Of a DNA stretch of 64,000 bases, positions 1 to 63,982 are shown piece after piece; position 1 is the first letter of the stretch; the number at the start of each line of letters is the position of its first letter. A model generated the notes under the pieces. It had not been told where the DNA came from. It saw only the letters and a program-made list of their open reading frames with translations, and searched no databases. This DNA comes from Octopus sinensis (Eukaryota), in NCBI RefSeq assembly GCF_006345805.1, contig NC_043005.1, positions 21,638,001 through 21,702,000 on the forward strand. Direction: 5' to 3'. Made by a program: the position numbers and the translations under genes.

Positions 1-106
1 TACAATGATGAATTTAAGTTGTGTGATCTGAGTAATGCGACTCAGTTGAGTGATGATGTACTTAAACCCAGCGATGGAAAATGGGATATATACTTAACTA
101 ACCCAG
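1..106 (+). CDS. Exon C0 (5' end outside window): PAN/Apple-like subtype C
   Basis: [35 protein letters not shown]; donor CCAG|GTCAGT at 106/107; near-identical to the 3' part of exon 62091-62327. Confidence 0.9.
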
Positions 107-432: not shown

Positions 433-469
<37 letters not shown>

Positions 470-3700: not shown

Positions 3701-6700
3701 AGAAAAACATTAATGATCTTCATATCTAACCAACAAAGAATTGAAATACCAATTACTATTAAATGCTTAATGATGGTTAATGATTAGAATACGTTGATGT
3801 TGTAACTTCCAAATTCACTTTCTTGTTCCTGTGCTTTAGTGTATCTTATTGATAAGTGAGTAATATCAAGCAAATATTTTAATATGTATTTTATTTAATA
3901 TATTAAAAACCAGAAATTCCTTCTGACTTATCCTTAACTTACTCTTAAAATATCTCAATAAACTTAATTCTTCTTTATTATATTTTTCTGAAATCATTCT
4001 AATATTAACTGTATCCTTAATAATTAACTGGAGGTGGAATAATCTGACTTACAGGGGGACAATTGACTGTTCTCTTTGTTATAAATACTTCACCCTGTCT
4101 TCAGTTTGAGAATATATTCACATCATGACTTGCATAACATTTTTTCCTTTAATAATACTTCAACAATTAGGAAGAATTTTAATTTGCTCTGTTTTGTCTT
4201 TTGCCACAACCTGAATCTAATAAAGCAAGATAATAAATTTCAATGCTTTCTTAGTCAGAGGCAAAGAACTTGTATGTTTATTTTGGTATAAGCCACCCAT
4301 TTTTATCTAGTTGGTCAAACATTGACCAAAACTGTCTTATAATAAGTGACATAGTTCCTGTAACCATTGCTTTGGTCATTACTGGAAGACAGTATGGTTT
4401 AGCTCTGGAGAAGATTAATAGAGTATGTTCTCCACTTTCTTCAATTGTTTGATTATGACATTTATTAATAAATGTGACTATTGTATTTGGGAACTATGAT
4501 ACTCCAAACTTATCAGAAACTCATGTAAGCTAACTGGAATAAAATATGTAAATATCCATCATTTTTGTACCTTTCTTATAATACTCTGTAACTACATACC
4601 AGCTTTACTCGGTGACTAAACTTTGAGACTTACAAATTGGACTGGTAATGTTTTGTTAAAGCATGGATTATCTGGATTTCTAAATCTATCATGGCTCAGC
4701 TTTGTTAGTCTGGTTTCCTTTTCTACACAGAGAGCTTACATGATATTTCACCAGGATCCTTAATCATTTCTTTTCATGTGATATATGTATGTCTGTATGT
4801 GTGTGTGTCAATATCTTTAGTTTGTTACAGTCAATATCTTATATTCTAGATTTGTCATTATCTCTTCATTCACATCCTCCTCCTGACATATATTGACCAT
4901 TGATATTAATTTCTATTATCACTTCCAGTTATTACAATAGTTAACTGTGGACCTCCCAAAGATGTTGTTGAAGCAAAGAAGTCCTACACTACCACCACCT
5001 ATAAATCTGAAGTGACCTACACATGTCCAGGAGGACGAAAGTTGAAGTCAAAGTGTAAAGACGACAATAAATGGACTCCAGTTACATCCAATTGCAAAGG
5101 TAATGTAAATAGGTTCTCTTTCGTTGTCTCTTTCTAGGTTTTTTTTTATTAAATATCTTTGTCAGAGAAAGAATGACTGTATCCACGACAATTTCCATGG
5201 TATTTGTGGCTGGTTGAAGGGAGAGAGAAACCTATCCTCAGAGGAGAAAACTTCCTAAATCTATGCAATAGAGAGAGCATAATTAAAGCTATCCAAGATT
5301 CAGACAATGGTATTAATTTGGGTAATGGATTAAATCTGCCAAACAAGAGCAGCAAATGAGGCAGTGTATTCTCTCCAGCAGGCGTCTGTATATTTTGTAT
5401 CTAACATATTCCATTCAAAATCCTTTGTCCTGAAGCGGATTTTTAATTATGGAGCCATAAGTCCACACAATGCCACATTCTTGTTCAGTAAAATCTACAG
5501 CTCTACCTCAGCAAATCTAGGAAGTTTTTCTCTTAAATTCTAACTTCAGCTTTCTTTCCCACACTTCATTTCATCCCCTGAAACTCTGTAGAATATAGTG
5601 CATGGAATTTTTCTTTACTAGAAAAAGTTCTGATGCTCTAATGGTCTTCCATTCCACCATCCTAAATCATTATGAGACAAATGATGATAGTGCTTTTAGA
5701 TAGAAAAAGAGGCAACATTTTTCATTAGAAAGATGTTAGTATCATTACCTCCAGTACTTGATTGCTATTTTGTGTTGTTGACCCACCCCTGACAGGAATG
5801 AAAGATAAAGTTAATATAGGCGTAGGAGTGGCTGTGTGTTAAGTAGCTTGCTTACCAACCACATGGTTCCAGGTTCAGTCCCACTGCGTGGAACCTTGAG
5901 CAAGTGTCTTCTACTATAGCCTCAGGCTGACCAAAGCCTTGTGAGTGGATTTGGTAGATGGAAACTGAAAGAAGCCCATGTATATATATATATATATATA
6001 TATAGCATGGAAAGCGGACGTTAAACGATGATGATGATGATGATGATGATGATATATATATATATGTATGTGTGTGTGTATATGTTTGTGTGTCTGTGTT
6101 TGTCCTCCCCAACATCGCTTGACAAACGATGCTGGTGTGTTTATGTCCCCATAACTTAGCGGTTCGGCGAAAGAGACCGATAGAATAAGTACTAGGCTTA
6201 CAAAGAATAAGTCCTGGGGTCGATTTGCTCAACTAAAGACAGTGCTCCAGCATGGCCACAGTCAACTGACTGAAACAAGTAAATGAGTATGGGCTGGATT
6301 TCAACTGCGAACATGATGAGCCTGTATACATACCATAAAGCATCTCTTCCAATGCTGTAATTAGTATACAGGTATACATTTAATATAAAGATTAAAATGA
6401 TGATGAAATCCTTTTCAAAGTAGAAGGAATTTTATCTTGGACCAATTGAAGAACCACCCACATCAAAGGTCACCGTGAACTTCTGAGACAAGAGTCCTTT
6501 CCGTTCAATATTCTTTGACCTACAGGTTTATGCTATGTGGAACCCACCTACCCTCATGTCACTTTAAATAATTTTCCTTGAAGAGAATATGGTCCTCTCC
6601 ATCCTCCTTTTCTTTACAAGTGAAACTTTAAAAATACAGATTACAGATTGACCAATGAGCAAATTCCCAATTACCAGACCTTTCAATCTCATCCACCACA

Positions 6701-9700
6701 CAACATCTTTTGCTATGGCTAACAGACAGAGGAAAAGAAACTTCTCTACTCAGTTAAAGGAGGATGAGGGGCTGTCATAATGATGGACTTGAATTACAAC
6801 CAGATCTGTCCCACACACAATGGCAGCAGTTTCACATAAATCTACATGTGACAAATGCCTGGACATGGAATAAGTGCATGGAACAGCACTCTTGGACAGA
6901 AATGTTTGATGGTATATCCATGACTGTAGATCTTGTCTTGTACCAGTAATGCACTTTGGTAGTATTGCCAAGGATTCCAGGTAGTTGTTCATAGTATTCT
7001 CTGATGAAAAGGATCTTTGAAACAATCTTTCCAGTTCATTCTCATGAATGCCTAGAATATCCTTGAGAATATTGGTTCTCTTTCCCCTCTGCTAATCTTC
7101 TATAGATTGCTAGAGTGTAACACCTACCAATTCCATTGTCCAGGTTAGGTTTGATGTGGCATACTTAGGATTACATTAGGTAATCTGACCTTCCCTTCTT
7201 AAGATTGTGGAATATAATTAAGAGAGATTTAGTTAATATATCTAACATGTTGGACATCCAATAGAGTGCTTCCACCATGGTGGTCAACAGTAAATATTAA
7301 CCCTCTGAAAGATCTTATACAGCTTATCTGTCAGTATAATCTGATGCCTGGTTCAACACTACCACATGACCCTTCAGGGGCAAATGTAGTCGAGAATACA
7401 TCAGCAATGATAACATATTTATTAGAGATGCATGCATTCACATTGAGCCACAGATGCATTGATTGGGCAGGGATGATATGAATCTCACAGGTGTAGAATG
7501 GAGGATACCGTCAACACTTCATGAGATTGCTGTTTCTGTCATGAATTGCTATGTCAGAAATAAAAATATGACCTCATTTTAATCAGTCATGTATTTATTA
7601 TTTAAGTATATGACAAACACAATTAGAGAAAGCAATGAGATTGTGTGCCATTCGCATCTTTCTGAAGGGCAGTAATTGTCTATGTAAATTGAACTGACTT
7701 AGATTGACAATCAAATCCAGATTATTGACTCACACCACTCAATTCATATATATACATTAAAAGAACAACTAGGGAAAAATACTCATATGACTTACAGCAT
7801 GAAAAATAAATAATAATGTGTGGGGCAAAAGTGTATTTACTAGCATGCAAGCATCTCATTATCATTTCCAAAACTCTATTAATGAGCTTCTCATTAATCC
7901 ACAAAATACACAGTGATTCTTCAGAGCATAGTCAGCATCTCTTGTAAAGAGCATTGTACGATTATGCATGTCATATTGTGGTCCAAGTGAGATCGTATTC
8001 GATCATATTATCTTTAAGTTGCCACAAAAGTACCAACATCACTGGGATATCTCTTGGCATGCTAGTAAATGACCATTCGCACCATATAGTAGATACAAAT
8101 TAGCATAACCGTTGACAAAATTAATAATCACAATTTACCTAATTGTATGGATGAATAACAACTTCCTTATTTTTAGAAATACCCCACCATATAATTTATC
8201 AACACCACTGGGATAATTCTTGCCCCTTGTATACTGCTTAGAGAGAGCTAAAGGCTAACTTGGGCCTGTCAATATATATCGCTATCCAAAAGATGAAAAC
8301 ACAACAAACCTACGAGTGACTACACTGGATATCCTAAACCTGGCATTGATGTTTTCTACAGGCTATTGGTTGTTTGATTAGCTGCACATTCAAAAAACAC
8401 CCTTCTACTCTGTGCACCATTGTAGACTGCATATGCATGCTATTATGGACTACAACCAATATGCCTAAATGGAATATATAATCAGAGATTACACTATGTT
8501 CATGCAATTCTTGATCTGTTGCTGACTTATGTCATTTAGTTGTTTCATTATTATATTGCATAATTGTACTTGCCACCTCTTCTTATGCATAACATCTCTG
8601 TGTCTGTGTGTCCGATTTATCTATTTGTACTTAAATGGTTGTGTATCTGTGCACGATTACATACATCTATGTGCCTATTCATATACACTTATATAGATGT
8701 GGAAGTATCTATGTACAGAAATGTGTTTCAGTGTATGCGTGAGCATATATTTCCATGAAGATGTGCCTAGAAATGTATGTAAATGTGCCTTATATACAAA
8801 TAACTGTAAATATATGTATATTCATACATATACATATAGCAATATATACCAGACTGTGTGAATATGTTCATGTGAGTATATATGAGTGTATATCAATATT
8901 TATTTCTGTATTTAAGTGTGTATAAGTACCATAAATATAAATCAGTGAGACTGAGTGTTGCGCAGCATAGAATGTGTGACCCCCACCAAGCGGTATTGTT
9001 TCACTTGCCACTAATCAACACCAGCTTTATTAACACTTACTTAATTCTGTGTACAAATGTCTGTATGTGTGCCAGACCACACGTCTGTGTGTTTGTATGA
9101 GCATGTATACATATTCCAGGCCATTTATATGTGGGTGTTGTACATCCATATCTATTAACAGTGTCATGTAATAACTGTTTTTGCTGTATTGTGTATTTGC
9201 TTCTTTTTGTATCTGATCTTTTTGATCAAGCTTCCATAAGAATGAAACTCTATCCCTTAACTTGCCATTTCTATCTATGAAGGCCAAAAAGAAACTAAGC
9301 AATAATAAGTTGTGTGAAACAGTTTATTTTAATGAGACACCTCTTGAAATCACCTGAAGAAACACAGCTACACTGACGGAACCTGATTCCTTTATATGTA
9401 TCCTCAATGCAGAATTTGTGAATTTGTGTTTAAGTTCTGTATCTATCATAAATATTGGTAACATCAACAATAATTATATTCTTGTTAACAACGGATGGAA
9501 TCCATAGAGCATCAGACAAACTGCACTGGGTATTTTTGTTCTAGATGTATTATATAACTTTTGAATTCAAATTCTGCTAATGTCAACTCTGCCTTTTCAG
9601 GCCCATTAAAATTTTTAAAAAACCAGTCAAGTGTAGGAGTCAACTTAATTGATTAACTTCTACCTCAAATGTTTGTCTTTTTTCTATATTAGAAATCATT

Positions 9701-11175
9701 GTTGTTTTTGGTGTTTACATTTGTCTCAATCTTCCTTTAATTCCAGTTTCTAAGATCCATTTTGTGAAAGTAAAAGGTGCAATTCTGGATGTACCTGGAA
9801 AAACTTTGGGGAGTACTGAAAGTGTAACAACAGATGTCTGTGCAGAAAAATGTTTGTCTGACAAAAATTGTTTATCATTTGAAATGAAGAGAAAAAGTGG
9901 AAAATGCTACTTATCAAAGGAAACTGCAGCTTCCTCCAAGAAAATAAAAGCAGCCAAAGGCAAAGATTACTACCAACGAGTAAATGGTAATTATTCTTTG
10001 TGTTTCTATTTTCTATAACAGAAAGTGACCTGATCTTAGACCATGTACTGAAACAAAAACAATTGCAGCATGGAAGGTGTTTATAAACCATTTAAAAACA
10101 CACAAAAACTGTTAGATTCACTTCAACATTTAAATTTAATTTGCCAAAATATTTTTGTCGCTGTGAGACTGCGACCTGTTCACTGACAAAATTCTGTGCT
10201 TTATCTATTTTGGCAAATTAAAATGAAATGTAGAAGTGAATCTAACAGGTTTTGTGTGTTTTTAAATGGCTTACAAGACCTTCCATGCTGCAATTGTTCT
10301 ATTTTCTAGTTTTACTGAAATTTGTGATTCCATTTCTATGTCATAGTACAGTCTATTCCAATAGAACATCCACTTCACTGGCACCTCTGTCGGTGGCACG
10401 TGTAAAAGATTCAAGCAAGGTCATTGCCAGTACCGCCTGACTGGCCCCCGTGCAGGTGGCACGTAAAAAGCACCCACTACACTTTCGGAGTGGTTGGCGT
10501 TAGGAAGGGCATCCAGCTGTAGAAACTCTGCCAGATCAAGACTGGAGCCTGGTGCAGCCATCTGGTTGCCAGCCCTCAGTCAAAACCGTCCAACCCATGC
10601 CAGCATGGAAAACGGACGTTAAACGATGATGATGATGATGATATATATATATATATATATATATAGTATTTACAGTTCCTAAAATTGCTTATTTCAGGAA
10701 TGTGTTTGTGCCTGTGGTTATAGATAAACTTGCCAATGTCTTTAAAGAAACAGTTCTATATATATCGTGCCGGTGGCACACATAAAGCACCATCCGACCG
10801 TGGCTGTTGCCAGCTTCGTCTGGTCTCCATGCCGGTGGCACGTAAAAAGCACCATCTGATCATGGCCGTTTGCCAGCCTCGCCTGGCACCTGTGCTGGTG
10901 ACACGTAAAAAGCACCCACTACACTCACGGAGTGGTTGGCGTTAGGAAGAGCATCCAGCTGTAGAAACACTGCCAGATCAGACAGGGCCTGGTGCAGCCT
11001 TCTGGCTTCCCAGACCCCAGTTAAACGGTCCAACCCATGCTAGCATGGAAAGCGGACGTTAAACGATGATGATGATGATGATGATATATATATATAGGAA
11101 TATATATATATTTCAGGAATGTGTTTGTGCCTGTGGTTATAGATAAACTTGCGAATGTGTTTAAAGAAACAGTCC

Positions 11176-11226
<51 letters not shown>

Positions 11227-11240
11227 TATATATAGGACTG

Positions 11241-11282
<42 letters not shown>

Positions 11283-11631
11283 ATATTGTATAGAGGGCAT
11301 TATTACACATAAATGCCTCACACTAGGAGGGACAAAGTCATTACTACCAAAATTATACTAATCATACCCAAATGCAGTTTTTCAAAGCAAGACATTTTGA
11401 AAAACTGCATTTGGGTATGATTAGTATAATTTTGGTAGTAATGACTTTGTCCCTCCTAGTGTGAGGCATTTATGTGTAATAATGCCCTCTATACAATATA
11501 GATATAATTAATTTGTTCAAAAGGAAAAAAATTATTTTTGAATTCTTTTCTTTTATGAAGTTTTCACGCTAGCTACCCGATAATTTCTTGTTAAGATCCC
11601 TTATTAAGAGATTATCCTTAATTGTTAAACT

Positions 11632-11663
<32 letters not shown>

Positions 11664-17600: not shown

Positions 17601-17883
17601 ACCATGCTTGTCATCAAACTCCAGGATGTAACTCTTATGAGTATAAACAAAAAGCTAAATTCTGTGATCGAAGTAATGTGACTCACTTGACTCATGACCT
17701 TGAGCCCAACAAAAAGGGTTGGGATACTTACGTCATTAACCCAGGTCAGTAGAATGCTTCCATTTTATTTGATTTTATTATGCACATGCTTGCATGTATG
17801 TATGTGTTTGTGTGTATTTACATAATCATACATGTGTTTGTGCAATATATATTGATATATATATATATATGTACATATATATA

Positions 17884-17933
<50 letters not shown>

Positions 17934-18230
17934 ACTTACATTGAAAGTCAGCAAGCTTTAGAAGCGTTGAAATGTATTGAAAGATTCAGATAACGGAATA
18001 ATTTTTTTCTCAAACGCAGGATAATGCAATTATTTAGCATGAACAGGATAAACTATCCATATTTTTGAGAAAAATCTGTCTCATGGCTAGCCACCAACAA
18101 ATGTTTCTGCAAAATATAGATAGTTTATCCTGTTCATGGTATATTATTAGCATTATCCTGCATTTGAGAATGAAATTATTTCCTTATCTGTATCTTTCAA
18201 GATATATGTGTTTGTATGTATGTATGTATG

Positions 18231-18280
<50 letters not shown>

Positions 18281-27200: not shown

Positions 27201-27993
27201 ATGTTAGCATCCCTTAGTACCGTTACAACTCCATGTCTTAGCTCTAGTCTTTCTTGTTCATTATCCAATATTCAAAATAACAGAAAAGTAAAACCAATTT
27301 ATGAAGTTGTATATTTCCTATATTTTCTCATGGATAATATAGCAAGATACCCTTTCTATCACCAACCATTATACTCAATGAAGTCAGTATATTTTCCATA
27401 TGCATGTGTGTGTGTGCATCCACGTGTGTGCACAGTGGTATATTTATTTCCATATAACAAATCAGAGCACTGTAAATGGAGCAACAAACGTAAGTTCCCA
27501 CTGTTGGATGAGGACATACATACATACATACATGCATGCATGCACACATACATACATACATACATACATACATACATCCATCCATCCATCCATACATACA
27601 TACATACATACATACATACATACATACATACATACATACATACATACATACATACATACATACATACATACATACATACATACATACATACATACATACA
27701 TACATACATACATACATACATACATACATACATACATACATACATACATACATACATACATACATACATACATACATACATAGTACATACATACATACAT
27801 ACATACATACATACATACATACCTACATACATACATACATACATACATACAACATACATACATAATACATACATACATACATACATACAACATACATACA
27901 TACATACATACATACTACATACATACATACATACATACATACATACATACATACATACATACATACATACATACATACATACATACATACATA

Positions 27994-28024
<31 letters not shown>

Positions 28025-28140
28025 CATACATACATACACATACATACATACATACATACATACATAATACTACATACATACTACATACATACATACATAC
28101 ATAATACATACATACATACATACATACATACATACATACA

Positions 28141-28171
<31 letters not shown>

Positions 28172-28173
28172 CA

Positions 28174-28204
<31 letters not shown>

Positions 28205-28910: not shown

Positions 28911-28947
<37 letters not shown>

Positions 28948-29106
28948 CACAGGAGTGGGTGTACGGTAAGTAGCTTGCTTACCAACCACATGGTTCCGGG
29001 TTCAGTCCCACTGCATGGTACCTTGGGCAAGTGTCTTCTACTATAGCCTCGGGCTGACCAAAGCCTAGCGAATGGATTTGGTAGACGGAAACTGAAAGAA
29101 ACCCAT

Positions 29107-46541: not shown

Positions 46542-46573
<32 letters not shown>

Positions 46574-49500: not shown

Positions 49501-52500
49501 TTCCGTACAGTTCTTTCAGATAAAGAAACATCACCATAAACTGTGCATATTTCTTTGGTTGCTTGTGAGGCATTTTTCTCTTTACGGAAAAAGAAAAGCA
49601 TCAAGTGCCAAAAATGAACTTTTTTATCTTTCATTTTAAAGGGTTACAGAATTAACATGGGTTATAAGAACATAAACCTTCTTCAATGAAAAGATAGCTT
49701 AAACTATGTTCTAAATGGAGGTGTAGTCAAATCCTATTTTATGGACTTAACCATGTTCTAAAATAAGTTGAAAGGTAAGCTACAATAAATCAGCATGAAC
49801 TTTCTGGACAACCCAATGCAATGCACTTAATGGAGAAATGCACTTCAGAACAGTACATATTTCTGAAGCAGAAAATTTCAAACTATAAGTGTAATTACAT
49901 CATAAAATAATGATATAATATGCTTCATCTTCAGGTATGACACCACTTAGATCAAATCAAATTCCACATTTAGTATTGATGCAAATATCAAGTGTATTAT
50001 GACATAACTACACTTATGATTTGAATTTTTCTACTTTGGTAATGTGCTGTATTTAACTGCATTTGTTCATTATTATTATTCATATGGCAGTTTGACCAAG
50101 GGAGCCCGACAGAGTAAGTACCAGATTTGAAAGCGGGTACTTATATACACACACTTATATACACACACTATATATATGTGCGTGTGTGTGTGTATGTGTG
50201 TATATATACACATAATTATAGTGGCCATCCTTTGACACGGGATTTATTGCTCCTGGAAAAAGTTTCGAGAAATTGCTAAAGATTAGTTGAGTACAGAATT
50301 GATAGTATTTTCTGATTGAGATTTATAAAAATTATAATTATTAACATGTCATTTTGAAAAAATGGTGGAATTTCAGAAAATGTTGCCCACATAAGTTGGA
50401 TTTTCTTCATTTTGACAGGGATTTTTCCTTTTTTTTACTATGCACATCAAAATGAAGCAGAGTAGCCTTTTATGAAAAAGGATGTGAAAATCTAAAATTT
50501 TTTTCTCACCCACTCCTTCCTAGGACCCTTTTAAATTATTTTCCAATCCTACACTTAGAAACGAGGTGGGGAAGCTTATATTTTTTTAACTAGACGTTGA
50601 AATTTATGAAAATCCACAATTGTGTGATATTGAAACATGACTGCAATGACCATCATCATTCTTTCCCCACTCCTTTTATTTTAATGCATTTAGATTTTTT
50701 GCAAACAACTTGCAGATGCAAGTGCCACCAGTTGAAAGCTCTGCATAACAGATGCTAGCAAACATATGAGGTCATCAGGAGAGAATGTGCACCATTTTGG
50801 GGCCTAATTCTCAATGGCGTCATTGTGCACCAGCCCCATCAGCACCTCACTGAAATGAGGCCCCACTTGCTAGATCAACTGGTTATCAGGTTTTGCTCAA
50901 TATTCTTCCAGCCATTGCTCATCATCTCTTTTTAATCAAATCCAGTAGTTTGCATTTTTCGCTGTAGTTTTGATATCACTCATGGTGGTATATGCTTTAC
51001 AATGAGTTAGGCATAATGGTAACAACCGTTGCCTCACACTGTGTCCAAGAAACCCCTACATCTAACTTTGATTTTAAAATAATCTGCTTTCCAGCAAGCA
51101 TCTTCACATTCTTCAAGGAGGTTTTCATAAAGATCAATCTTTCAGACCCAAGTGGCATCAATGCTATTTTCATGAGGAACCATTAACTCAGCTAGATTTA
51201 CAACTTTCCCCCATCATTTTCAAGTTTGTGGTGAAGAAAATTTTTTTTTAAATTCCTATCAAAACAGAAAATACATGTGGATGACCTATTCTGAAATAGC
51301 ACCAATTAATAAATTGATTGATTTCTCTTCTCACCTTTTCCTTATATGGTATGAAACAGTCAAATTTCACATCATTAAAAATAGAAAAACATGCATGTAT
51401 ACATACACGTTTTTATATGTGTAAGCAAATTTCTTCAATTTGATTCATGCAATATGTTTTATTGTAACATTGTCATTATTTCCTCATTCTTACCTTCCCA
51501 CTAAAATGCACATACCATTGATGTCAATTTCTGTTTTCAATTCCAGCTATTGACAAAATAAACTGTGGACAACCAAGAGACATTGCTGGTACATCAAAGT
51601 CCTACAGTTCCACCAACTACAGAGATGAAGTGACCTACACATGTCCACATGGAGAAAAACTAAAATCAAAATGTGGAAAGGACAAAAAATGGACTTCATT
51701 AGATTCTACCTGTGAAGGTAATGCAAATAGCTTCTCTCTCTTTTTATCTCTGTCTATGTATTTTGTTTTATTTTTATGCTAAATGCCTTTGTTAGAGTAG
51801 GACTGGCTGACTCTATGGCAATTTCTGCAGCGATTATGGATGGAAGGAGGGAGAACAGAAGCTATCCTCAGTTCAAAGACCTCCCCAAATACTTGCAACA
51901 GAGTGGACATCATTTATTCTACCCAAGGGCCATGTATTAGATTGGATGATGGATTAAGTCCACCAACCATATAGGTGATACGTGGCAGTTTCTCCCTCCA
52001 ACAGCCTTCCACAAAGCTTTCGTCTACTAAATTTCATCCTTAGTTGTGGAGCAAATTCTTAACCACATAAGCAAGACTCCACTCAGGACCACAGAGTTGT
52101 GAACGAACCTTCTTAACCTCACACTCATACCCAAAGGATTCTATGTGTGTCTTCTCTTAATTTCTAACTTTTTCACTTGAGCTTTCTGAATCTTGTCAGT
52201 GGTGGAGGTTGATGGGTATCCTGTGCCCTCTTCATACTGGTAGCCAGAAACTGCAAGAAGCCAGTTGTGTATGTGTGAGCACAAGCATCTTTCTGTCTAT
52301 GTTTGTTCCCCACCACCACTACTTGAAAATGGTGTTGGTTTGTTTACATCCCTGTAACTTAGTGATTCAGCAAAAAGAATAAATACCAGTGCTTTAAAAA
52401 AAAAGTACTGGAGTTGATTCATTCAACTGAAATTCTTCAAGGCAGTGCTCCATCATGGCCACAGTCTTATGACAGAAACTAGTTAAAGATAAAAAATTCT

Positions 52501-53396: not shown

Positions 53397-56300
53397 TGTT
53401 GTGTCTGAGGAGAGTCATTTTATTTTTGTGCCTTATAATTTAACACACTCACCGGTAAAATTTCCTCTTATTATTTATTTTTATTTTCCTAAAATTGTTG
53501 TTGCATCTTGCAACCTTTCCAATGGTCTTGAGAGTCAAGACTATTGAAAATGACTCTCCCCAGACACAACAGAATATGTTTCAACACATGAACTCACATA
53601 AAGAATCTTGCAAACCAAATCCAAAAATGAAATATATATACACACACACACACACACACATATATCTATATGTATGTATGTTGATAGATATTTAGGTAAG
53701 TAGCTATGTATCTAGATAGGTAAGTAAGTAGGTTAGTATAGTGGTTGATTGGTTCATTGTAATATGTGGGTGGAGAACACCATATATCAGGCACTTGTAG
53801 AACTTTATTTTACTGAGGTGGGCAGGTTGTCTACTTTGTATACTCAGACAGCTCCATCCTTTGTCATCCCCTTTGTGTGGTTCAACATTTAGAGATCAGC
53901 TCACTACCTGACCTAATATCTTACTGGGTCTTCTTCTTTCATAAGTTCCTTCCACTTTAAGCGATTGGCATCTTCTTTATATAGCTGCCTTCATCCAGAC
54001 ATATCACATGGCCAAGTCACCAGTCTTCTCTCTTGTACATTATATTACACCTATTATGCCTAATTTTTCTGTCAACACATTTAAACTTTTTAGAGCATGC
54101 AAGCTGATATTACACGTTCTGTGGAGCATACTAGCTTCATTCATCTCTACTCTTTGCAAATCCTCTCCATTCACAGTCCACATCTATTGCTATATAGTAT
54201 AGCTGTTTGTACACAACACATAAAATCTGCCTCTCACTCAAAGAGAGAAATGTTTTGTTGCTAACAAGAGTAATAGCTCTCTGGACTTTCTCTGTTTCAT
54301 TTTTAATCAAGCAAAAATACATTCAGAATATCTTCCTCTACTGCTAATTAGGTCACCCATGTAACAGACACTGTCTACAACCTCTAGGAAGCCTCCTGGA
54401 AAATCCAATTCTTGTGTGTCCTCAATGTTTATTGTTCCTGCACATCTGACACATACAAAGGCTACTTTCTCTGTTAACATACCTGTAATTACACTGCACT
54501 TCTGATGTGTGCATGTCTTACCCTGAGTACCATATTGAATTCCAACCAACATCTTTCCTACTTATTTAGCAGGGCACGCACATAATATATATGCAACATT
54601 GATGTCAATTTCTGTTTTCAATTTCAGCTTTTGAAGACATTGACTGTGGAAATCCAAAAGACATTACTGGTGCAGCAAAGTCCTATGAAACCACCACTTA
54701 TAAATCTGAAGTGACCTATACTTGCCCAGAGGGAGAAAAACTAAAGTCAATATGTGAAAAGGACAACAAATGGACTCCAACTGTGGAAACTTGTAAAGGT
54801 AACATATGCTTCTTCTTTCTGTTCTCTCTGTCTATGTAATTTTGTTTTAATTTTGTGTTAAAGAGGAAGACAGACTGAATACATGACAAGTTCCTCAATG
54901 TATGTGGGGGAGAACTCAGACCAGGGACCTCACAAATGGTTGCAGCAAAGTGGACATCTTTAATTCTACCTAAGGGCCGGGTAATAGCATTACACTGGAT
55001 GATAGCTTGATTCCACCAACCAAGAGCTAGAAGTGTAGACAGTTTTTCCTCACCTCTTCCACATAGTTCACATCCATACATTTCATTTACAAGGCTTAGT
55101 TGTGAAGTGAATTTTTAACCATACAGAAAAATTCTACCTTGTACCTTATGTTTGTCAAGTAAACTTACTACCTCCATCTTGATAGCTTTTCTCTTAACTT
55201 CTAGCAGGACATTTCTCTACCATACTTTGCTATCATCTAGAACTCTGTAAATATAATGTCTGAGTTTTTATTTGCTAAAATGTAGCAATCCCCTAATACA
55301 GATTTCTGATGCCCTTGTTATCTTTCATTCAACTACCTATAATTATAATACTACTAATAACAATAATGGTTTCTGATTTAGGCACAAAGCAGTAGTTTTT
55401 AATGGATTGCATTTAGTCAAAACCATGAACACTGCTAATTGCCTGGCACATTGTTTTATTCATCCCCACAAGATTGAAAGCCAAATTTGACCTTGGTTTA
55501 ATCTGAACTGATGGCCAAAAGAGCCTGATTACTTATTGTAAAGCATTTCTTCTAATATTCTAATTAGTACACATCATCATCATTATTAACATCATCATAA
55601 TTTAACATCTGTTTTCTATGCTGGCATGGGTTGGACAGTTTGACAGTGTCTAAATAACTGCAATGCTGCATTAGGCCTAATATCATCTTTGGCATGGTTT
55701 CTGGATATTTTTCCTCACACTAACCACTTTACAGTGTGTACTGGATCCCTTTCCTTGGTTCTGGTAAGATCACCAGTAGCTTGCAAGACAAAATACAGAA
55801 ATGGTAACAAAATGCCCCCTAAGCTAAGTGGGAGTGTATTTGAGAGAGTGAGAGGTAGATTTGTGCTGTGTGTTGAAGGCTAAGGTATGATAGAGCGACA
55901 AGCATAGGTGTCTTACTATAGAGGAGATACACTGGTACTCCATATTACATGATGATAGGTAAGAGTAACTATAAAAGAGATAAAGTTGGTGATAGAAGGG
56001 TACTAGATCTTGCTCTCAAGGTAAAAGATAATGAATATAAGGGAGAATATAGATTGTGGATAAAGAAGGAAGAAAAGGATGCGTAATTTCATAAGGGTGT
56101 GGGAAGAGATGGGCTAGAAGTGAGTGTATTGAGTGATAAAGGAAGATGACGCTTTGGCTGATGGTAAATATCGGTATAAAGAGAGAGGTGAGAGATAGAA
56201 TTGACTCAAGGAGGAGGAAGTGACGAGTACAGTAGCAATGTCATATATTTGTTAGTAGATGAGAAAATAGGGAGGTGATATATAGGGTTTCAAAGTGGAG

Positions 56301-59300: not shown

Positions 59301-62300
59301 TTTCATTGATCAATTCCTACCTCAAAGTTTTAACTTAACCTCGATGATGGAAAATTATTGCTTTTATAGTAGATGTTATTGTTTATTGGTTTAAATTTTC
59401 CTTTAATTGTAGATGCTCAGATCCATTTTGTGAAAGTAAAAGGTGCATCTCTGGCTATAGCTGGGAAAACTGTGTGGAAGAAGAAAAATTTAACAGCAAA
59501 AGACTGTGCAGAAAAATGTTTGTCTATCCCAAAATGTTTATCATTTGAAGTAAATATGGACAAAGGAAAATGTTTCTTATCAAAAGATACTGCAGCTACC
59601 TCCAAAAAAATTATGACAACCAGAATCAGAGATTACTACCAACGAATAAAATGTAATTATTTTTTGTATTTTATTCTACAAACTAGCAATGCACCCCAGC
59701 ATTGCCTGGGTGTTATGACCTACAGCCACATTGTATTATTTGTTCCTTTCTTATGGGCAGAATCAGCACTCGAGGAGCATCAAGTAAATAACTTTTCTTT
59801 ATAAACATGTTTATAAAAATATTTTCCTTTATAAACATGTTTTTCAGTCATTTTCTGATGAACAATATTTTTGGCACCAAAAATATGTACAATGACAGCT
59901 TAGATCAGAAGGAAATCCTAACATTGACCTCAAAATTACCTCAATATTGTGTGATACAGCCTCGTTTTGGTGTTAATTTTTCTAGTAAAATAGAGTTACT
60001 GTTCAAAAAACTTACTTCATGCTGGTAGCTGAAAAATTGCTCAGTCTTTTGATACCCCATATAGCAAATATTGGCAACTCAGTTTCATGACTACAAATTG
60101 GGTAATGTAGAAGCTGAAACAATTCTTCCTCATCCCATAATATTTGTTGATAACACACATATACATGTACATTAGCTTCCCCAATGAAAAGGCTATGTTC
60201 AAAAGTATTATGGTTTTCTGCAAGCATATTTGGTATCAGTTTATATCAATGTTGAGGCCAACAAAATAAAAAGGGACTTTTTGGTTGTATGTATATGTAC
60301 ATATGTAAGGATATGGGTAAATAGGGTTAGTGGTGTGGGCAGTTTGGCATAAATGTATAGGGACGCTGTGCTTCTTGAAAATAAATGGGTTATGCTGCTA
60401 TGCAGAAGTGGGGCAATAGTAAGAAAGCAATGTATGGCTTCATGACAGATGAATGGTGAAAGCCTAAGAAATAAAGTAAAGTATATTAACAAGTTGCACA
60501 AGAAAAGGACTTTGTGTTGCTTTTGAGTGCAACCATGCAAAAGTAAGCAATCAAGACTTAGGGATGTAAAGAAATTGATGCCAAATGAGGATGTAGAGGT
60601 ATCCATATTGCAGAAGGTGAGGTACATGGAAAGGAAGCTGCTTCATTATAGCACCATCTCTGTAATGTTTGGGCAGACTGCATACTTCAGCAAATGTTCA
60701 GTGAAGCTGGCAAAGCTTCTAGGTAAACTATGTTTCATATATCTCCAGTTTTGGTAGAATAAACATACATGTGATCCTTCTTTTCAAAATATCTTGTTGC
60801 TGGTAAAATTGGAAGAATGACACATTAGACACTCTCTCTAAGAAAACAGATAATTGGATAATCGTATTAATTCCATTATGCAGAAGACAGAATTGAAAAA
60901 ATTTTGTGAAAATTTCTGTGAAAATTCTTAAAGAAAGCCCTTGTTCCAAATCATTGCCTGATTCATGAGCTCATTTTCAGCAATCTGAAACCTATATAGC
61001 TGGTTCCAAAGTTCTAGTGCTCTTTTGCTGGCAGCTTTACATTTTGCTATTGCTCTTGTTTAGTAAGTCTTGTTCCTGACATTTGATTCCTTTTTCGTTT
61101 ACATCAGTAGACCACTTGGGTGGTTGGCATACATGTTGCATATTTTAAGCATGACTGGATGCCAACAGGTCTTCCATTTCATTGCCCTATGAAGGTCTCC
61201 TACTAGGCTTGAGAGCTCCAGTATCTTAGATACTCATGGGAATCCATGCCATTACCCGGGTAGGTATTAGTTTCCATCATTGAAACAAATGAAAGTGATT
61301 TTCTACAGGATTTGCTCCCTGAGTGAGTTTTGTTGAGATTTTACAACATCAACCCTAACTTGCCTGCCAGCCAAAGCTTAGAGATGCAAAGTTCACCCTG
61401 TGTAATCTCCCATGTATAAGTTTAGGGTGCTAAAAAAATTTAGTGAAATCACTGCCACTATTATTATCACTACTATTGTTGCTTGTTGTTGTTGCATTAT
61501 ACATATTCTTTAAAAAGATAATTATGCAGAAGAAACAGCAATTAAAATTTGGAATAGAATATTTAAAAACCATCTCATGCATCATTTTATGAATGGACAA
61601 TATATTATTAAAATAAAAAAATTCATCCAGAAGATAATTTTTCACCTTAAGACACACTTTTAAGAATGAATATGTATTCTAGTGCACCAGGATACATAAA
61701 CAAGAGCCCACCTGAATGTTTCAGTTGTAGGTAATCCATTTGTATATCTCTCTTTTAATACTCTGCTTTTGTTTAAGACTAAATGATCATAAAAACATTT
61801 GATATGTTGGTTGACAACCTGTTTAAGGGAATATTAAAACTATACCATTAAAGAAGACAAAGTTTCCTATAAGTCTAAAGATATTCTACAACTCTCATAA
61901 ATTCTGATTAGGGTATCATTTTGTGGATCATTTATTTGTTTATAATAAATCGGCTATTTACAAAATTATACACCACATTCTCCACAGTATTAAATATATG
62001 CTTGAAAATGTGTGTGTGTGTGTTTTTGTTTGTTTGTTTCAGTAGGTGAATGTGTATAAAATATATTTCTTGTTTTCTATTTTATTTCAGTTGATGGAGG
62101 GCCTGTTATGCTGAAAAAGGTTCACATACCAAAGAAGGCTACTTTAGGACGGCTTAGGGATAAAACCTTAAAGGAGTGTGATAAGGCTTGTCAACAATAT
62201 GAAGGATGTAACACTTATCAGTACAATAATAAATCTAAGTTGTGTGATCTGAGTAATGCGACTCAGTTGAGTGATGATGTACTTAAACCCAGCGATGGAA

Positions 62301-63982
62301 ATTGGGATATATACTTATTTAACCCAGGTCAGTAGAGTGTTTCTATTTTTATGTGTGCTATGTGTATATAAATATAAATATATATTACATGCATATATGT
62401 ATACATATATACTTATATATATATGTATTAAGACCTTTGGTACTATGTTGTGCCTAAGAAGACCCATCAAGCCAAGTAAAATCCCAGTCAAAGCAGACAC
62501 TGGTGTCATGCAAATGGCACCCATGCCCGTGGCACGTAAAAGCTCCCATTACACTCTCAGAGCAGTTAGCATTAAGGAGGGTATCCAGCCATAGAAACCA
62601 TGCCAAATCAGATTGCCAGCTTGCCAGCTCTGTTTAAACTGTCTAACCTATGACAGAAAGGACAACAGATCTTAAGTAGTGATGGTGTTGATGATGATGA
62701 AATATATATATATATATATATATAAATATTATAAATTTCTTTATGAAGTTAATTTTTCAACTCATTATTGTAAAAGCTAAAGTGTTATTATCTGTCTGTT
62801 ACTTTATATATTTTTTGTGACATAATTCTAATAATTATTTTATCCTTAATAATTAATGTGAAAAGGAATAATCTGACTTATAGGAGAAAAAGATAGTTTT
62901 CTTAGTTAAAAAGAGTTCACCCTGTCTTCAGTTTGAGAATATATTCATATCCTAGCCTGAATAACAACTTTTCCTTTAATTTAGCATTTAGGTGGAATTT
63001 TAATTTGCTCTGACCTGTGTTTTGCCACAACTCTGAATCAAATAGAGAGAGATAATAAATTTCAATGCTTTCTTGTCAGATAAACATAAAAGTGGAGAAC
63101 TTTTATGTTTATTTTGGTAAAAGCAACTCACTTCTCTCTCATTAGCCAAGTATTAGCCAAAACTGGCTCAAAATAAGTGATATTGTTCCTACTACTATTA
63201 TTTTGGTCAAATTTCTTCCCTGACAGACAATATGATTTAGTTCTGGAGAAGATTAATGGAGTCTGTTCTCTACTTTCCTCAATTGTTTGATTATGGAATT
63301 GATTAATAAATGAGATTATTGTATTAAGGAAGTATGATTCTCCAACCTTATCAGAAACCTGTGTGAGGTAACTGGAATAAAATTATTGTATTTGGGAATT
63401 CTGATATTCCATCCTTATTAGAAATTTGTGTAAGCTAGCTGGAATAAAATATGTGAATATCCTTTATCTTTGTAACTTTTCTGTAACATTTTGTAACTAC
63501 ATACCAATTTTACTTGAGATTTACAAATTGGATTGGTGATGTTTTATTAAAGTATGGATCATCTGGATTTCTAAATCTATCACAGCCCAATTTTGTTAGC
63601 CTGGTTTCATTTCCTTCGCAGAGAACTTACAAGATATTTCACTAGGCTCCTTAATCATTTCCTTTCACGTGATATGTCTGTATGTGGGTGCAGATGTCTT
63701 CAGTTTGTTTCAGTCATAATCTTTTATTCTAAATTTGTCATTATTTTCTCATTCTCAGCCTCCTCCTAACATACATTCACCATTGATATCAATTTCTATT
63801 ATCACTTTCAGCTATTACAAAAGTTAACTGTGGACCGCCAAAAGATGTTATTGGTGCAAAGAAGTCCTACACTAACACCACCTATAAATCTGAAGTGACC
63901 TACACATGCCCAGGAGGACAAAAGTTGAAGTCAAAATGTAAAAGTGACAATAAATGGACTCCAGTTGCATCTAATTGTGAAG
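1..63982 (+). CDS. Internal part of a large multi-exon gene encoding a repetitive, probably extracellular PAN/Apple-Sushi(CCP) protein (15 exons in window)
   Basis: 15 exons with polypyrimidine-AG acceptors and GT donors (exon 1 is cut by the window edge), all phase 1-1. They splice into one open frame of 3022 nt with junction codons V,V,A,A,D,L,V,V,P,A,A,D,F,A. Each complete exon has exactly 4 Cys. Confidence 0.85.
309..414. repeat. Imperfect fold-back hairpin
   Basis: 22-bp perfect outer arms (309-330/393-414) and 14-bp perfect inner arms (347-360/362-375). Confidence 0.85.
741..932. repeat. Fold-back palindrome with 95-bp arms and 2-nt loop
   Basis: 741-835 pairs with 838-932 at 93 of 95 positions; both mismatches are CpG to TpG in the left arm. 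Confidence 0.95.
855..908 (+). ncRNA. Candidate minimal type I hammerhead ribozyme (Penelope-like repeat)
   Basis: Stem I CTGT(863-866)/ACAG(897-900), extendable to 12 positions with one mismatch. Core CCGATGA(867-873) is a U4C variant. Helix II CG-GCAA-CG, GAAA(884-887), helix III ACTC-A-GAGT, GUA cleavage after 896. Confidence 0.6.
1314..1463. repeat. (TCT)n microsatellite
   Basis: Direct observation; explains the poly-S, poly-F and poly-R ORFs. Confidence 0.95.
1805..2085 (+). mobile_element. RTE-like LINE endonuclease fragment
   Basis: Decayed frame [38 protein letters not shown], typical of an APE endonuclease N-terminus. Confidence 0.6.
4929..5099 (+). CDS. Exon S1: short Sushi/CCP-like domain
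   Basis: Acceptor ttccag, donor G|GTAATG, 171 nt. (V)[56 protein letters not shown] shows the CxxP..YxC..C...W....C pattern. Confidence 0.85.
5819..6288 (+). mobile_element. tRNA-derived SINE with internal microsatellite
   Basis: A-box-like TGGCTGTGTGTTAA and B-box-like GGTTCAGTCCC; further copies at 28946-29380 (+) and 32600-32976 (-). Confidence 0.75.
6400..7250 (-). mobile_element. Old Tx1/L1-like LINE remnant shared by paralogous S-to-A introns
   Basis: Minus-strand [27 protein letters not shown] and [10 protein letters not shown] (CCHC-like). Homologous blocks at about 2600-3010, 24640-25300, 36780-37480 and 56700-57205. Confidence 0.5.
9747..9986 (+). CDS. Exon A1: PAN/Apple-like subtype A
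   Basis: 240 nt, ttccag|..G|[60 protein letters not shown] has the CxxxC..C.SF..C.L PAN core. Confidence 0.9.
10370..11085 (+). mobile_element. Two tandem SINE/LINE-tail copies ending in (GAT)n
   Basis: ggcacgtaaaaagcacccactacact..ggcgttaggaag..aacccatgc..ggacgttaaacgatgatgat occurs at about 10480-10640 and 10905-11085, with three imperfect subrepeats of about 62 bp at 10769-10915. Confidence 0.65.
11276..11506. repeat. Perfect palindrome with 111-bp arms and 9-nt loop
   Basis: 11276-11386 is the exact reverse complement of 11396-11506. Confidence 0.95.
11679..11729 (-). ncRNA. Candidate type I hammerhead ribozyme
   Basis: Minus strand AGCTTC-CTGATGA-TTTCATTTGAAT-GAAA-CAG-TTCTAGTC-CTG-TA-GAAGCT. 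6-bp stem I, canonical core, 4-bp stem III, GUA site; helix II is weak. Confidence 0.65.
12922..13200 (-). mobile_element. RTE-like LINE 3' end with (TGA)n tail
   Basis: Minus ORF ..[27 protein letters not shown] ends just before a (TGA)n tract. Confidence 0.65.
14125..14159 (-). ncRNA. Candidate minimal (dimer-type) hammerhead, degenerate
   Basis: Minus strand GTTT-CCGACGA-A-GAGC-TCC-GCTT-GAAA-C-GTT-AAAC. Palindromic ACGT helix III; U4C core. Confidence 0.45.
14673..14758. repeat. Inverted repeat with 27-bp perfect arms
   Basis: ttgttgacagtaactttgaagttttgg and ccaaaacttcaaagttactgtcaacaa with a 32-nt spacer. Confidence 0.85.
16051..17167 (+). mobile_element. Decayed mariner transposon, 5' end missing
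   Basis: Transposase from ATG 16068 with stops and frameshifts. Motifs [36 protein letters not shown]. Degenerate 3' TIR ..cagacaacccaa followed by TA. Confidence 0.9.
17511..17744 (+). CDS. Exon B1: PAN/Apple-like subtype B
   Basis: 234 nt, ttcaag|..G|[63 protein letters not shown]. Confidence 0.9.
17977..18200. repeat. Imperfect fold-back (MITE-like) element
   Basis: Arms of about 100 nt, including caggataatgc/gcattatcctg and catgaacaggataaactatc/gatagtttatcctgttcatg. Confidence 0.8.
19900..20877 (-). mobile_element. Decayed RTE-like reverse transcriptase fragment
   Basis: Minus-strand QFGF..G and CIDLEKAFT motifs; similar to 43400-44995 and 53990-54590. Confidence 0.65.
20878..21779 (+). 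mobile_element. 5'-truncated Tc1-like transposon
   Basis: Transposase fragments [30 protein letters not shown]; 3' end ..tgtccaacccctg followed by TA; homologous to 57210-58413. Confidence 0.88.
23426..23596 (+). CDS. Exon S2: Sushi/CCP-like domain
   Basis: 171 nt, ttcag|..G|[63 protein letters not shown]. Confidence 0.85.
26592..26825 (+). CDS. Exon A2: PAN/Apple-like subtype A
   Basis: 234 nt, tttag|..C|[60 protein letters not shown]. Confidence 0.9.
27514..28290. repeat. Long (TACA)n microsatellite, about 780 bp
   Basis: Direct observation; explains the HTYI/MYVC ORFs. Confidence 0.97.
28946..29380 (+). mobile_element. tRNA-derived SINE
   Basis: Colinear with 5819-6288 (accaaccacatggttccgggttcagtcccactgc..). 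Confidence 0.75.
30175..31010 (-). mobile_element. Internally deleted mariner-derived element
   Basis: TIRs GGTGGTATCAAAAGGTCCCTGGACTAGTT and its near complement at 30979-31008, TA-flanked. Minus-strand remnant [14 protein letters not shown] is a YSPDLAP-type motif. Confidence 0.8.
31270..32190 (+). mobile_element. Decayed RTE-like reverse transcriptase fragment
   Basis: PGPSGL.GKM, then [22 protein letters not shown] motifs with many lesions. Confidence 0.65.
32600..32976 (-). mobile_element. tRNA-derived SINE, reverse copy
   Basis: Reverse complement of the 5819 family (gcccaaggtgccac..gactgaaccc..ttcttaccacacagcc). Confidence 0.7.
33103..33336 (+). CDS. Exon C1: PAN/Apple-like subtype C
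   Basis: 234 nt, ttgcag|..G|[64 protein letters not shown]. Confidence 0.9.
33617..34478 (-). mobile_element. Second copy of the mariner-derived element at 30175-31010
   Basis: Colinear similarity: gtggtataaaaagattcc..gtttaataataagtaacttattt at the start and ..gctgccatctgttggc..cagaact at the end. Confidence 0.75.
34486..35230. mobile_element. Mariner N-terminal (HTH) remnants on both strands
   Basis: Plus strand [13 protein letters not shown] near 34690; minus ORF 34955-35218 [27 protein letters not shown]. Confidence 0.6.
35853..36020 (+). CDS. Exon S3: Sushi/CCP-like domain
   Basis: 168 nt, ttccag|..G|[62 protein letters not shown]. Confidence 0.85.
37490..38040 (-). mobile_element. RTE LINE 3' fragment inserted in an intron
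   Basis: Minus-strand [47 protein letters not shown], the canonical RTE C-terminus. Confidence 0.8.
38378..38457. repeat. 40-bp tandem duplication (2 copies)
   Basis: gacaca(c/t)agttgctcttgccgaatgtggactgcaggtta(t/c) twice. Confidence 0.9.
39495..39734 (+). CDS. Exon A3: PAN/Apple-like subtype A
   Basis: 240 nt, ttctag|..C|[60 protein letters not shown]. Confidence 0.9.
43400..44995 (-). mobile_element. Decayed RTE-like reverse transcriptase
   Basis: ORF 44773-44985 [23 protein letters not shown], followed by QFGL, VHQG-like and downstream RT motifs. Confidence 0.7.
45130..46190 (+). mobile_element. Tx1/L1-like LINE C-terminal fragment
   Basis: [20 protein letters not shown], ..[13 protein letters not shown], ..[17 protein letters not shown] in decayed frames. 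Recognised by eye only. Confidence 0.5.
47934..48167 (+). CDS. Exon B2: PAN/Apple-like subtype B
   Basis: 234 nt, atctag|..G|[63 protein letters not shown]. Confidence 0.9.
48554..49816 (-). mobile_element. Full-length decayed mariner transposon (same family as 16051-17167)
   Basis: 30-bp TIRs TTG(T/G)GTTGTCC(G/A)GAAAGTTCATGCTGATTT with 2 mismatches; TA at 48552-48553; disrupted transposase 49634 to 48627 with [23 protein letters not shown]. Confidence 0.93.
51547..51717 (+). CDS. Exon S4: Sushi/CCP-like domain
   Basis: 171 nt, ttccag|..G|[63 protein letters not shown]. Confidence 0.85.
53391..53577. repeat. MITE-like element with 31-bp inverted termini
   Basis: atattctgttgtgtctgaggagagtcatttt and aaaatgactctccccagacacaacagaatat, one mismatch, next to (TA)n. 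Confidence 0.75.
53990..54590 (-). mobile_element. RTE-like LINE fragment with Cys-rich insert
   Basis: ORF 54307-54552 ..[30 protein letters not shown]; same family as 43400-44995. Confidence 0.65.
54628..54798 (+). CDS. Exon S5: Sushi/CCP-like domain
   Basis: 171 nt, tttcag|..G|[63 protein letters not shown]. Confidence 0.85.
57210..58413 (+). mobile_element. Decayed Tc1-like transposon, left TIR lost
   Basis: ORF 57250-57879 has a paired-like HTH ([20 protein letters not shown]), RKPLL and [12 protein letters not shown], then frameshifted FQDDNAP and [15 protein letters not shown]. 3' end ..tgtcaaacccctg followed by TA. Left boundary approximate. Confidence 0.9.
59413..59652 (+). CDS. 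Exon A4: PAN/Apple-like subtype A
   Basis: 240 nt, ttgtag|..T|[60 protein letters not shown]. Confidence 0.9.
62091..62327 (+). CDS. Exon C2: PAN/Apple-like subtype C
   Basis: 237 nt, tttcag|..G|[64 protein letters not shown]. Confidence 0.9.
63315..63448. repeat. 67-bp diverged tandem duplication
   Basis: attattgta..ctggaataaa twice; the paralogous intron near 4480-4545 has one copy. Confidence 0.75.
63812..63982 (+). CDS. Exon S6: Sushi/CCP-like domain
   Basis: 171 nt, tttcag|..G|[63 protein letters not shown]; 17 nt differences from S1. Confidence 0.85.

Follow-up and report, generated by a model that had tools for sequence, protein, structure and literature searches.

Tandem PAN/Apple and Sushi domain exons in octopus genomes: probably part of a very large gene for a secreted-type array protein

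Introduction

What kind of gene places a single small cysteine-rich domain in each exon, repeats such exons in a regular order over tens of kilobases, and runs past the end of the DNA in view? The question is raised by a stretch of 64,000 nucleotides from Octopus sinensis (assembly GCF_006345805.1, contig NC_043005.1, positions 21,638,001 to 21,702,000 of the forward strand), referred to here in its whole length as the window. A first-pass annotation, made from the letters alone, had described it as part of a giant array of PAN/Apple and Sushi (CCP) modules whose exons might be freely recombined by splicing.

We consider it likely that the window lies inside a very large octopod gene, probably in its 3' portion. 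The gene is predicted to encode a secreted-type array of the form [PAN(A)-PAN(B or C)-CCP]n, in which every module has a phase 1-1 exon to itself. The domain types, the exon logic, the family as predicted proteins in three Octopus genomes and its small named relatives in coleoid cephalopods are already known. Within the literature searched, the PAN-PAN-CCP-GON array architecture seems not to have been described, and the same goes for its scale and its connection to the coleoid GON proteins.

Results

The window is AT-rich eukaryotic DNA (GC, the fraction of guanine plus cytosine, 0.32-0.40) with microsatellites and transposon relics. A tblastn search with two PAN-like open reading frames (ORFs), followed by a listing of open frames with four cysteines, identified open segments on the + strand only, nine of them PAN-like and six Sushi-like. 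A regular expression for the classical long Sushi spacing had no match in the window, and the Sushi exons surfaced through the four-cysteine list. Each exon has a single best acceptor (a pyrimidine tract with AG) and a single best donor (GTAA or GTCA), and the splice sites are strong and of the constitutive type throughout. Complete exons measure 168-240 nucleotides, are without exception multiples of three in phase 1 at both ends, and encode one domain each with exactly four cysteines. They end in G, C or T and begin with TT, CT or AT, and every possible exon skip stays in frame. Spliced together, the 15 exons yield a stop-free product of 1007 amino acids, and the introns between them span 1.5-8.2 kb. 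The first-pass annotation had correctly read the single four-cysteine domain of each complete exon, the bases at the exon ends and the frame of every skip, as it had the number of exons, their order and the open ends of the array. By tblastn, no additional domain exon was found on either strand of the window and no GON or signal-peptide exon within it; the gene runs on beyond its end. Scans of the window for Rfam families and tRNAs gave no match.

The modules follow one another in the order C-S-A-B-S-A-C-S-A-B-S-S-A-C-S, where A, B and C are types of PAN/Apple domain and S is Sushi. Exon 1 (1..106), truncated at the window start, holds the 3' part of a C-type domain and leaves through a phase 1 donor, CCAG/gtcagt (the slash marks the junction). 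It is followed by a Sushi exon (exon 2, 4929..5099, 171 nucleotides), an A-type exon (exon 3, 9747..9986, 240 nucleotides), a B-type exon (exon 4, 17511..17744, 234 nucleotides) and a second Sushi exon (exon 5, 23426..23596, 171 nucleotides). The middle of the array consists of exon 6 (26592..26825, A-type, 234 nucleotides), exon 7 (33103..33336, C-type, 234 nucleotides), exon 8 (35853..36020, Sushi, 168 nucleotides), exon 9 (39495..39734, A-type, 240 nucleotides) and exon 10 (47934..48167, B-type, 234 nucleotides), the last being the most divergent of the exons. Exons 11 (51547..51717) and 12 (54628..54798), of 171 nucleotides each, form a pair of consecutive Sushi exons and precede exon 13 (59413..59652, A-type, 240 nucleotides), the sole exon of the window with a final T. 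Exon 14 (62091..62327, C-type, 237 nucleotides) and exon 15 (63812..63982, Sushi, 171 nucleotides) close the series, the latter with the donor GAAG/gtaatt.

The identity of the modules, previously proposed from the letters alone, is confirmed by profile, by matches to the sequences of solved structures and by the fold of a homologous unit. The 1007-residue peptide matches Pfam PAN_1 (PF00024) over eight stretches with 213.7 bits (E 2.2e-64; gathering cut-off 21.4) and Sushi (PF00084) over six stretches with 54.6 bits (E 1.4e-14; gathering cut-off 20.7). Each exon type also exceeds the gathering score on its own (A, exon 3, 45.1 bits; B, exon 4, 26.6; C, exon 7, 37.7; S, exon 2, 24.2), and a single Sushi exon covers positions 1-56 of the 56 in the profile. 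The matches are nearly as wide as the exons (for example 4-77 of 79 and 6-55 of 56 residues), leaving linkers of a few residues, which bears out the earlier description of domains with almost no linker. The reading as a long beads-on-a-string protein of extracellular-type modules is supported too. All eight complete PAN exons have exactly four cysteines, in columns that are invariant across 17 homologous units and across 25 A-type and 27 B/C-type exons. All six Sushi exons have four cysteines and a KW ahead of the fourth, the tryptophan being invariant across 36 Sushi exons.

A profile of 17 homologous S-A-B units matches, among sequences of solved structures in the PDB, the CCPs of DAF, CR2 and MCP and the apple domain of TgMIC4. 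Structure was modeled with AlphaFold2 on a homologous S-A-B unit from Octopus bimaculoides, 53-65% identical to related units, in place of the window's own peptide; the model has a mean predicted local distance difference test score (pLDDT) of 81.8. Its top Foldseek matches, with probability 1.00, are the prekallikrein/FXI apple, TgMIC4, the galactose-binding lectin SML-2 and HGF-N, and the plasminogen N domain is also among the best. Pfam detected no VWA, EGF, pentraxin, HYR or CUB domain in the window peptide or in the O. bimaculoides model that ends in a GON domain (P0003); the two contain PAN, Sushi and, in P0003, GON, besides sub-threshold noise. The 57 cysteines, nine N-x-S/T sequons and 14% lysine of the window peptide fit a product that is extracellular in character.

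The PAN domains fall into two classes, A being the first and B and C subtypes of the second (about 55% identity within a subtype, 37-49% between them). The array had been described as a strict PAN-CCP-PAN repeat; the unit is instead PAN(A)-PAN(B/C)-CCP, which is seen also in GON-Abd-1 and GON-SepT-1, short relatives introduced below. A comparison of the window with itself by blastn uncovered a higher-order repeat (4775..48200, + strand). Exons 2-4 (S-A-B) and their intron flanks reappear as exons 8-10 at a distance of about 30.5 kb downstream, and exons 5-7 (S-A-C) recur about 28-33 kb downstream as exons 11/12-14. Exons 1-2 and the intron between them recur at exons 14-15, offset by about 58.9 kb, with 78-83% nucleotide and 85-86% amino acid identity, and exon 12 is a local duplicate of exon 11 including its flanks. 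A six-domain super-repeat, S-A-B-S-A-C, of ~30 kb is duplicated together with its introns. Because paralogous similarity reaches well into the introns, and intron and exon similarity recurs at offsets of ~30 and ~59 kb, the array grew via tandem duplication of multi-exon genomic blocks.

Between paralogous exons, the median ratio of nonsynonymous to synonymous differences per site (pN/pS, by the Nei-Gojobori method) is 0.59 for S, 0.81 for A and 0.70 for B/C exons. Across homologous units the scaffold residues are invariant and many surface positions vary. An invariant scaffold and a pN/pS of 0.6-0.8 would fit a conserved framework bearing variable surfaces. Diversifying selection was considered and found unconvincing, the few A-exon pairs with a ratio above 1 resting on only about 80 codons each. 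As a separate observation, synonymous divergence is low in the A exons of the window (3, 6, 9 and 13), with pS between copies of 0.19-0.20 against 0.34-0.50 for the co-duplicated S exons; over all pairs the medians are 0.27 for A exons against 0.39 and 0.44 for their S and B/C neighbors. The low pS, which raises pN/pS to near or above 1 in some pairs, could reflect gene conversion restricted to the exon or constraint on synonymous sites, and the counts are small.

Among 5.8 billion protein clusters there are eight close matches to the window, all of them predicted uncharacterised proteins of O. bimaculoides, Octopus vulgaris and O. sinensis. A HMMER scan of 1.84 billion representatives with an O. 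bimaculoides family model (P0002) as query gave only 394 matches at E<=1e-3, and from about 30% identity downward the alignments are confined to the tandem Sushi stretch of the query. The family comprises LOC118764742 and LOC118764741 in O. sinensis, LOC128248837, LOC128248838, LOC128248840, LOC106869402 and LOC106869390 in O. bimaculoides, and CAI9728790.1 (4470 amino acids) in O. vulgaris. These are fragmentary, uncharacterised products of automated annotation that share the exon structure of the window, keep the grammar S(S)-A-B/C in every case, and are 45-87% identical to the window per exon; the best identity of each window exon to any database protein is 62-87%. The automated NCBI name of some of them, SVEP1-like, is misleading, because no VWA, EGF or pentraxin domain was detected in the window peptide or P0003. 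The earlier impression that the array matches no characterised family also held in the databases and full-text literature searched.

The closest counterpart is LOC118764742 (XP_036361601.1, O. sinensis, 2643 amino acids), with which the window peptide is collinear over residues 1631-2637 at 66% identity and with four gaps. This protein has the same domain order as the window, S-S pair included, and all 15 counterpart domains. Exons 11-15 are clear positional counterparts of its last five domains (82, 86, 65, 73 and 82% identity; exons 11 and 12 correspond to residues 2309-2364 and 2366-2421, respectively), and are closer to the O. sinensis than to the O. bimaculoides homologues. At the nucleotide level, megablast of the window against the loci of O. 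bimaculoides, O. sinensis and O. vulgaris returned only matches of 75-92%, in transposons and exon flanks. At the protein level, none of eight ORFs taken from the window had an identical entry in a collection of 15 billion proteins.

The family locus can be followed over its greatest length in O. bimaculoides, where the interval 88.258-88.816 Mb of CM046610.1 carries gene models of 1133, 709, 1865, 761, 4083 and 1067 amino acids on one strand and then CACHD1. Four stretches, about 165 kb, were read for exons, and all 74 exons checked have four cysteines, AG/GT splice sites and a length divisible by three. Domain exons in the same phase were followed from 88.248 Mb, and the array is continuous over at least 567 kb; by homology, the epithet giant given to the window gene is upheld. 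The loci of O. sinensis and O. vulgaris have the same continuity and an exon spacing like that of the window, and their domain-exon matches found by tblastn are stop-free, with four cysteines in all but one partial copy. The same grammar and order are conserved in O. sinensis, O. vulgaris and O. bimaculoides.

The last O. bimaculoides model, alone among them in having a proper terminus, closes with a GON domain (PF08685, 6.3e-33) followed by a cysteine-rich tail. An older model of that species, LOC106869390, ends exactly at the start of this GON-bearing model, and its S-S-A-C-S is collinear with exons 11-15 of the window; exon 15 would accordingly lie about 15 domain exons before the GON end. 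Directly downstream of that end lies a CACHD1-like gene (dCache_1 and CACHD1_C domains; 37416-41495 of locus sequence L001, at about 88.822 Mb of CM046610.1), a synteny anchor for the 3' end.

Such a locus could also be a tandem cluster of independent genes of one family, of about 700-4500 amino acids each, with the window lying in one of them or spanning two. We regard this as possible but unlikely. Gnomon and the O. vulgaris annotation do divide the locus into models of 667-4470 amino acids, and the independent O. bimaculoides and O. vulgaris pipelines begin one model at the same orthologous methionine (P0002 and P0157). The models themselves, however, do not look like complete genes: none has a signal peptide, most begin at a methionine within a domain, and several end by reading into an intron (P0002 with '...ISICTS' and P0012 with '...EECLYP', for example). 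Intact domain exons in the same phase occupy the gaps between the O. bimaculoides models and the 10 kb upstream of the first, and the only GON-bearing terminal exon set found is that of the last model. Because in-phase exons run through the gaps, starts fall inside domains, ends read into introns and signal peptides are lacking, the separate gene models are fragments of one continuous array.

The GON end connects the octopus array to small secreted proteins. A search with PAN domains and the GON tail matched GON-Abd-1 of Abdopus aculeatus (R4G2C1, 465 amino acids), GON-SepT-1 and GON-SepT-2 of Sepioteuthis australis (R4G2C9 and R4G7D8; 451 and 503 amino acids) and an unnamed protein of Acanthosepion pharaonis (CAE1175485.1). 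GON-Abd-1 and the GON-SepT proteins have the layout signal peptide-PAN(A)-PAN(B)-CCP(1-2)-GON. All 15 window exons match the corresponding module of GON-Abd-1 at 39-58% identity, and at the end of the O. bimaculoides locus GON-Abd-1 aligns to the last A, B and GON exons with 46-69% identity; the two have in common a homologous GON domain and an unusual KCWSDK motif in the last A domain. The coleoid proteins and the window thus use the same three module types in the same order, A-PAN, B-PAN and CCP. They differ in extent: the coleoid proteins have 359-503 amino acids and a single PAN-PAN-CCP(1-2) unit, with a signal peptide in the three full-length ones, whereas the window has 15 modules with neither a signal-peptide nor a GON exon, and the homologous Octopus loci have dozens to hundreds of modules. 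The gene of the window is therefore best described, as far as its predicted product goes, as a greatly expanded relative of the coleoid GON proteins and not as a typical member. A signal peptide followed by an A-B PAN pair also heads zonadhesin-like proteins of Argonauta and a WSC-domain protein of O. bimaculoides, which suggests that the A-B pair may be an older binding cassette.

The first-pass annotation had gone further and suggested that the protein could be diversified by combinatorial splicing. In its fuller form, the idea would have the phase 1-1 exons produce diverse recognition molecules by exon skipping or alternative first exons in the manner of Dscam or the clustered protocadherins. 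Several features could be read in this way. Every skip is in frame, and the domains are divergent (45-86% between copies) with a fairly high pN/pS. The Gnomon model LOC128248837 leaves an intact A exon (L002, 14983-15222) at an internal phase 1 GT ('...CAEK/S...'), and several A domains of the 4470-residue O. vulgaris model (P0157) are truncated at the same place ('...TLWTD...'); these may represent either an alternative 5' splice site or a recurrent annotation artefact. In addition, in-frame, hydrophobic, signal-peptide-like stretches, two of the four with an ATG, precede the acceptors of the A exons (9653-9746, 26516-26591, 39449-39494 and 59373-59412).

We nevertheless judge combinatorial use improbable. 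Symmetric phase 1-1 exons are generic to shuffled extracellular modules and give no sign of regulated skipping, and the splice sites of all exons are of the strong constitutive type. The statement that no junction between window exons can form a stop codon is true, but it is unremarkable, as only 0.52 stop-forming junctions would be expected by chance among 105 donor-acceptor pairs (calculated from the base frequencies of 74 related exons). The junction rule moreover breaks down in O. bimaculoides, which has exons with AA or AG at the start as well as exons with a final T. Barring the few truncated A domains, the annotated models, including the collinear LOC118764742, carry successive domains in genomic order.

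The hydrophobic stretches read as polypyrimidine tracts do in translation, and similar ones also precede B/C and S exons. Residues 1-27 of GON-Abd-1, its signal peptide, do align to the in-frame intron flank 9677-9746, and a relic first exon with a signal peptide and A domain was considered at these sites; it was dropped on account of the similar pyrimidine-tract ORFs before B/C and S exons, and the stretches are most likely just polypyrimidine tract. No signal-peptide exon was found in the O. bimaculoides locus L001 around its terminal A exon. The duplicated flanks were inspected for selector- or docking-type elements, with no further search for them. The freely recombinable appearance of the exons is a by-product of building an array from class 1-1 modules and not evidence of use.

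That the array is a non-functional repeat in decay, or a tandem repeat wrongly collapsed or expanded in assembly, is very improbable even though the introns are filled with transposon relics and microsatellites, for the 15 window exons (exon 1 in part) and the 74 of O. bimaculoides keep an open frame, four cysteines and canonical splice sites, the O. sinensis and O. vulgaris domain-exon matches are stop-free, pN/pS is below 1 overall, copies 45-86% identical are not the near-identical copies of assembly duplication, and order and content are conserved between species, so that exon integrity across the window and the loci of three species effectively refutes it.

The introns of the window contain several mobile elements and simple repeats. 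Relics of mariner/Mos1-type transposases lie in introns 3 (16765-17052, +), 7 (34955-35218, -) and 10 (48708-49402, -), with Pfam matches to Transposase_1 (5.6e-20) and HTH_48 (3.1e-5); a copy in the O. vulgaris locus L006 shares 89-92% identity with those at 16060-17172 and 48552-49817. Two Tc1-like relics, in intron 12 (57250-57879, +) and intron 4 (20877-21785, +), match HTH_Tnp_Tc3_2 (8.5e-10) and are 80-87% identical to each other. A compound microsatellite of ~1 kb, which reads MYVCMYVC or similar in all frames, and a long T/CT-rich tract, at about 27300-28350 and 1280-1500, give rise to many spurious long ORFs on both strands. Lastly, a short interspersed repeat of about 220-330 bp occurs in tandem in intron 3 (10441-10765 and 10883-11184) and again in intron 14 (62515-62724), with copies of 83-91% identity in the O. 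bimaculoides and O. sinensis loci; it contains no tRNA-like portion according to ARAGORN.

Discussion

The gene structure of the window is well supported, and the following origin can be proposed for it. A small coleoid secreted protein with the layout signal peptide-PAN-PAN-CCP(1-2)-GON would have had its internal unit amplified in the Octopus lineage, and the array may have grown by unequal crossing-over between repeat blocks. Because the exons are of phase 1-1, duplication of blocks would be tolerated with no loss of frame. All exons would normally be included. Their product would be a secreted, N-glycosylated protein, rich in lysine and rod-like or bead-like in shape, which displays at one time a large number of PAN (lectin- or protein-binding) and CCP surfaces that differ slightly from one another. 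Within a secretion or matrix, such a protein could bind multivalently or form cross-links. As a lead only, the naming style of the short relatives, which is that of posterior salivary (venom) gland transcripts, suggests saliva or mucus.

Better known proteins offer points of comparison. Vertebrate apple proteins (plasma prekallikrein and factor XI) and the N domains of HGF and plasminogen have the PAN/Apple fold, a helix against an antiparallel beta-sheet, in common with the octopus modules and are their best Foldseek matches, and the tandem apples of prekallikrein and FXI, which mediate protein binding, offer a parallel to the array. Their four apples are however packed as a disc on a protease, without CCP or GON, and with 10-20% identity they are not orthologous. 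MIC4 of Toxoplasma gondii and SML-2 of Sarcocystis are multivalent adhesins of tandem PAN/Apple domains with galactose-binding lectin activity (PDB 4a5v, 2yil/2yip), and provide a functional analogy for an array of PAN domains, although they belong to a different kingdom and consist of about 2 to 6 PAN modules alone, with no one-domain-per-exon array. For the Sushi exons, the best sequence matches are SVEP1, CSMD, DAF, CR1, CR2 and MCP, which likewise are built from class 1-1 CCP exons into long beads-on-a-string arrays. The CCPs of the octopus array differ from theirs in being short (56 amino acids) and alternating with PAN pairs, and neither the window peptide nor P0003 has a VWA, EGF, pentraxin, HYR or CUB domain.

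Several points weigh against reading the window as part of one very large secreted-type gene. The models examined, whatever their species, yielded neither a signal peptide nor a 5' end. The array is divided into several models by three annotation pipelines, and may comprise more than one transcription unit. The window itself has no GON exon and is linked to the GON end through collinearity with O. sinensis and O. bimaculoides, and its gene is known from DNA alone. A pN/pS of 0.6-0.8 could also reflect relaxed constraint, the array being partly redundant. For GON-Abd-1 and the GON-SepT proteins, an origin in the salivary or venom gland is a lead and not a result, drawn from their UniProt names, and the expression of the short relatives says little about the giant form. 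Names of the type 'X-Abd-1' and 'X-SepT-1' reportedly come from the posterior venom gland transcriptomes of Ruder et al. (2013, J Mol Evol 76:192).

With the window still taken as an internal part of a very large gene, a bolder version can be put forward tentatively, and we hold it to be less likely than that general reading. The ~0.57-Mb Octopus locus might be one transcription unit of about 280 one-domain exons, encoding a secreted [PAN-PAN-CCP]n-GON protein of about 15,000-20,000 amino acids that arose by runaway amplification of a 450-residue salivary or venom-gland protein of coleoids. Both sizes are extrapolations from the 165 kb sampled, in which an exon occurs about every 2 kb. Array length and module content might then vary between species and individuals by unequal crossing-over, and possibly between transcripts by exon skipping.

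If the locus does produce one transcript of that size, its product would be among the largest extracellular proteins known. As a single gene it would be a textbook-scale case of a giant protein built by tandem duplication of class 1-1 module exons, and an innovation specific to the octopus lineage that goes unmentioned in the searchable genome papers. The 'uncharacterized' and SVEP1-like models of three Octopus genomes can now be tied to the small GON proteins of squid and octopus, which matters for annotation, expression and proteomics in these animals. With its diverged copies, the array constitutes a natural series of PAN and CCP modules for the study of ligand specificity. With hundreds of PAN (lectin-like) and CCP modules, its product would be a candidate for a major structural or adhesive component of octopus saliva, mucus, egg coat or sucker matrix.

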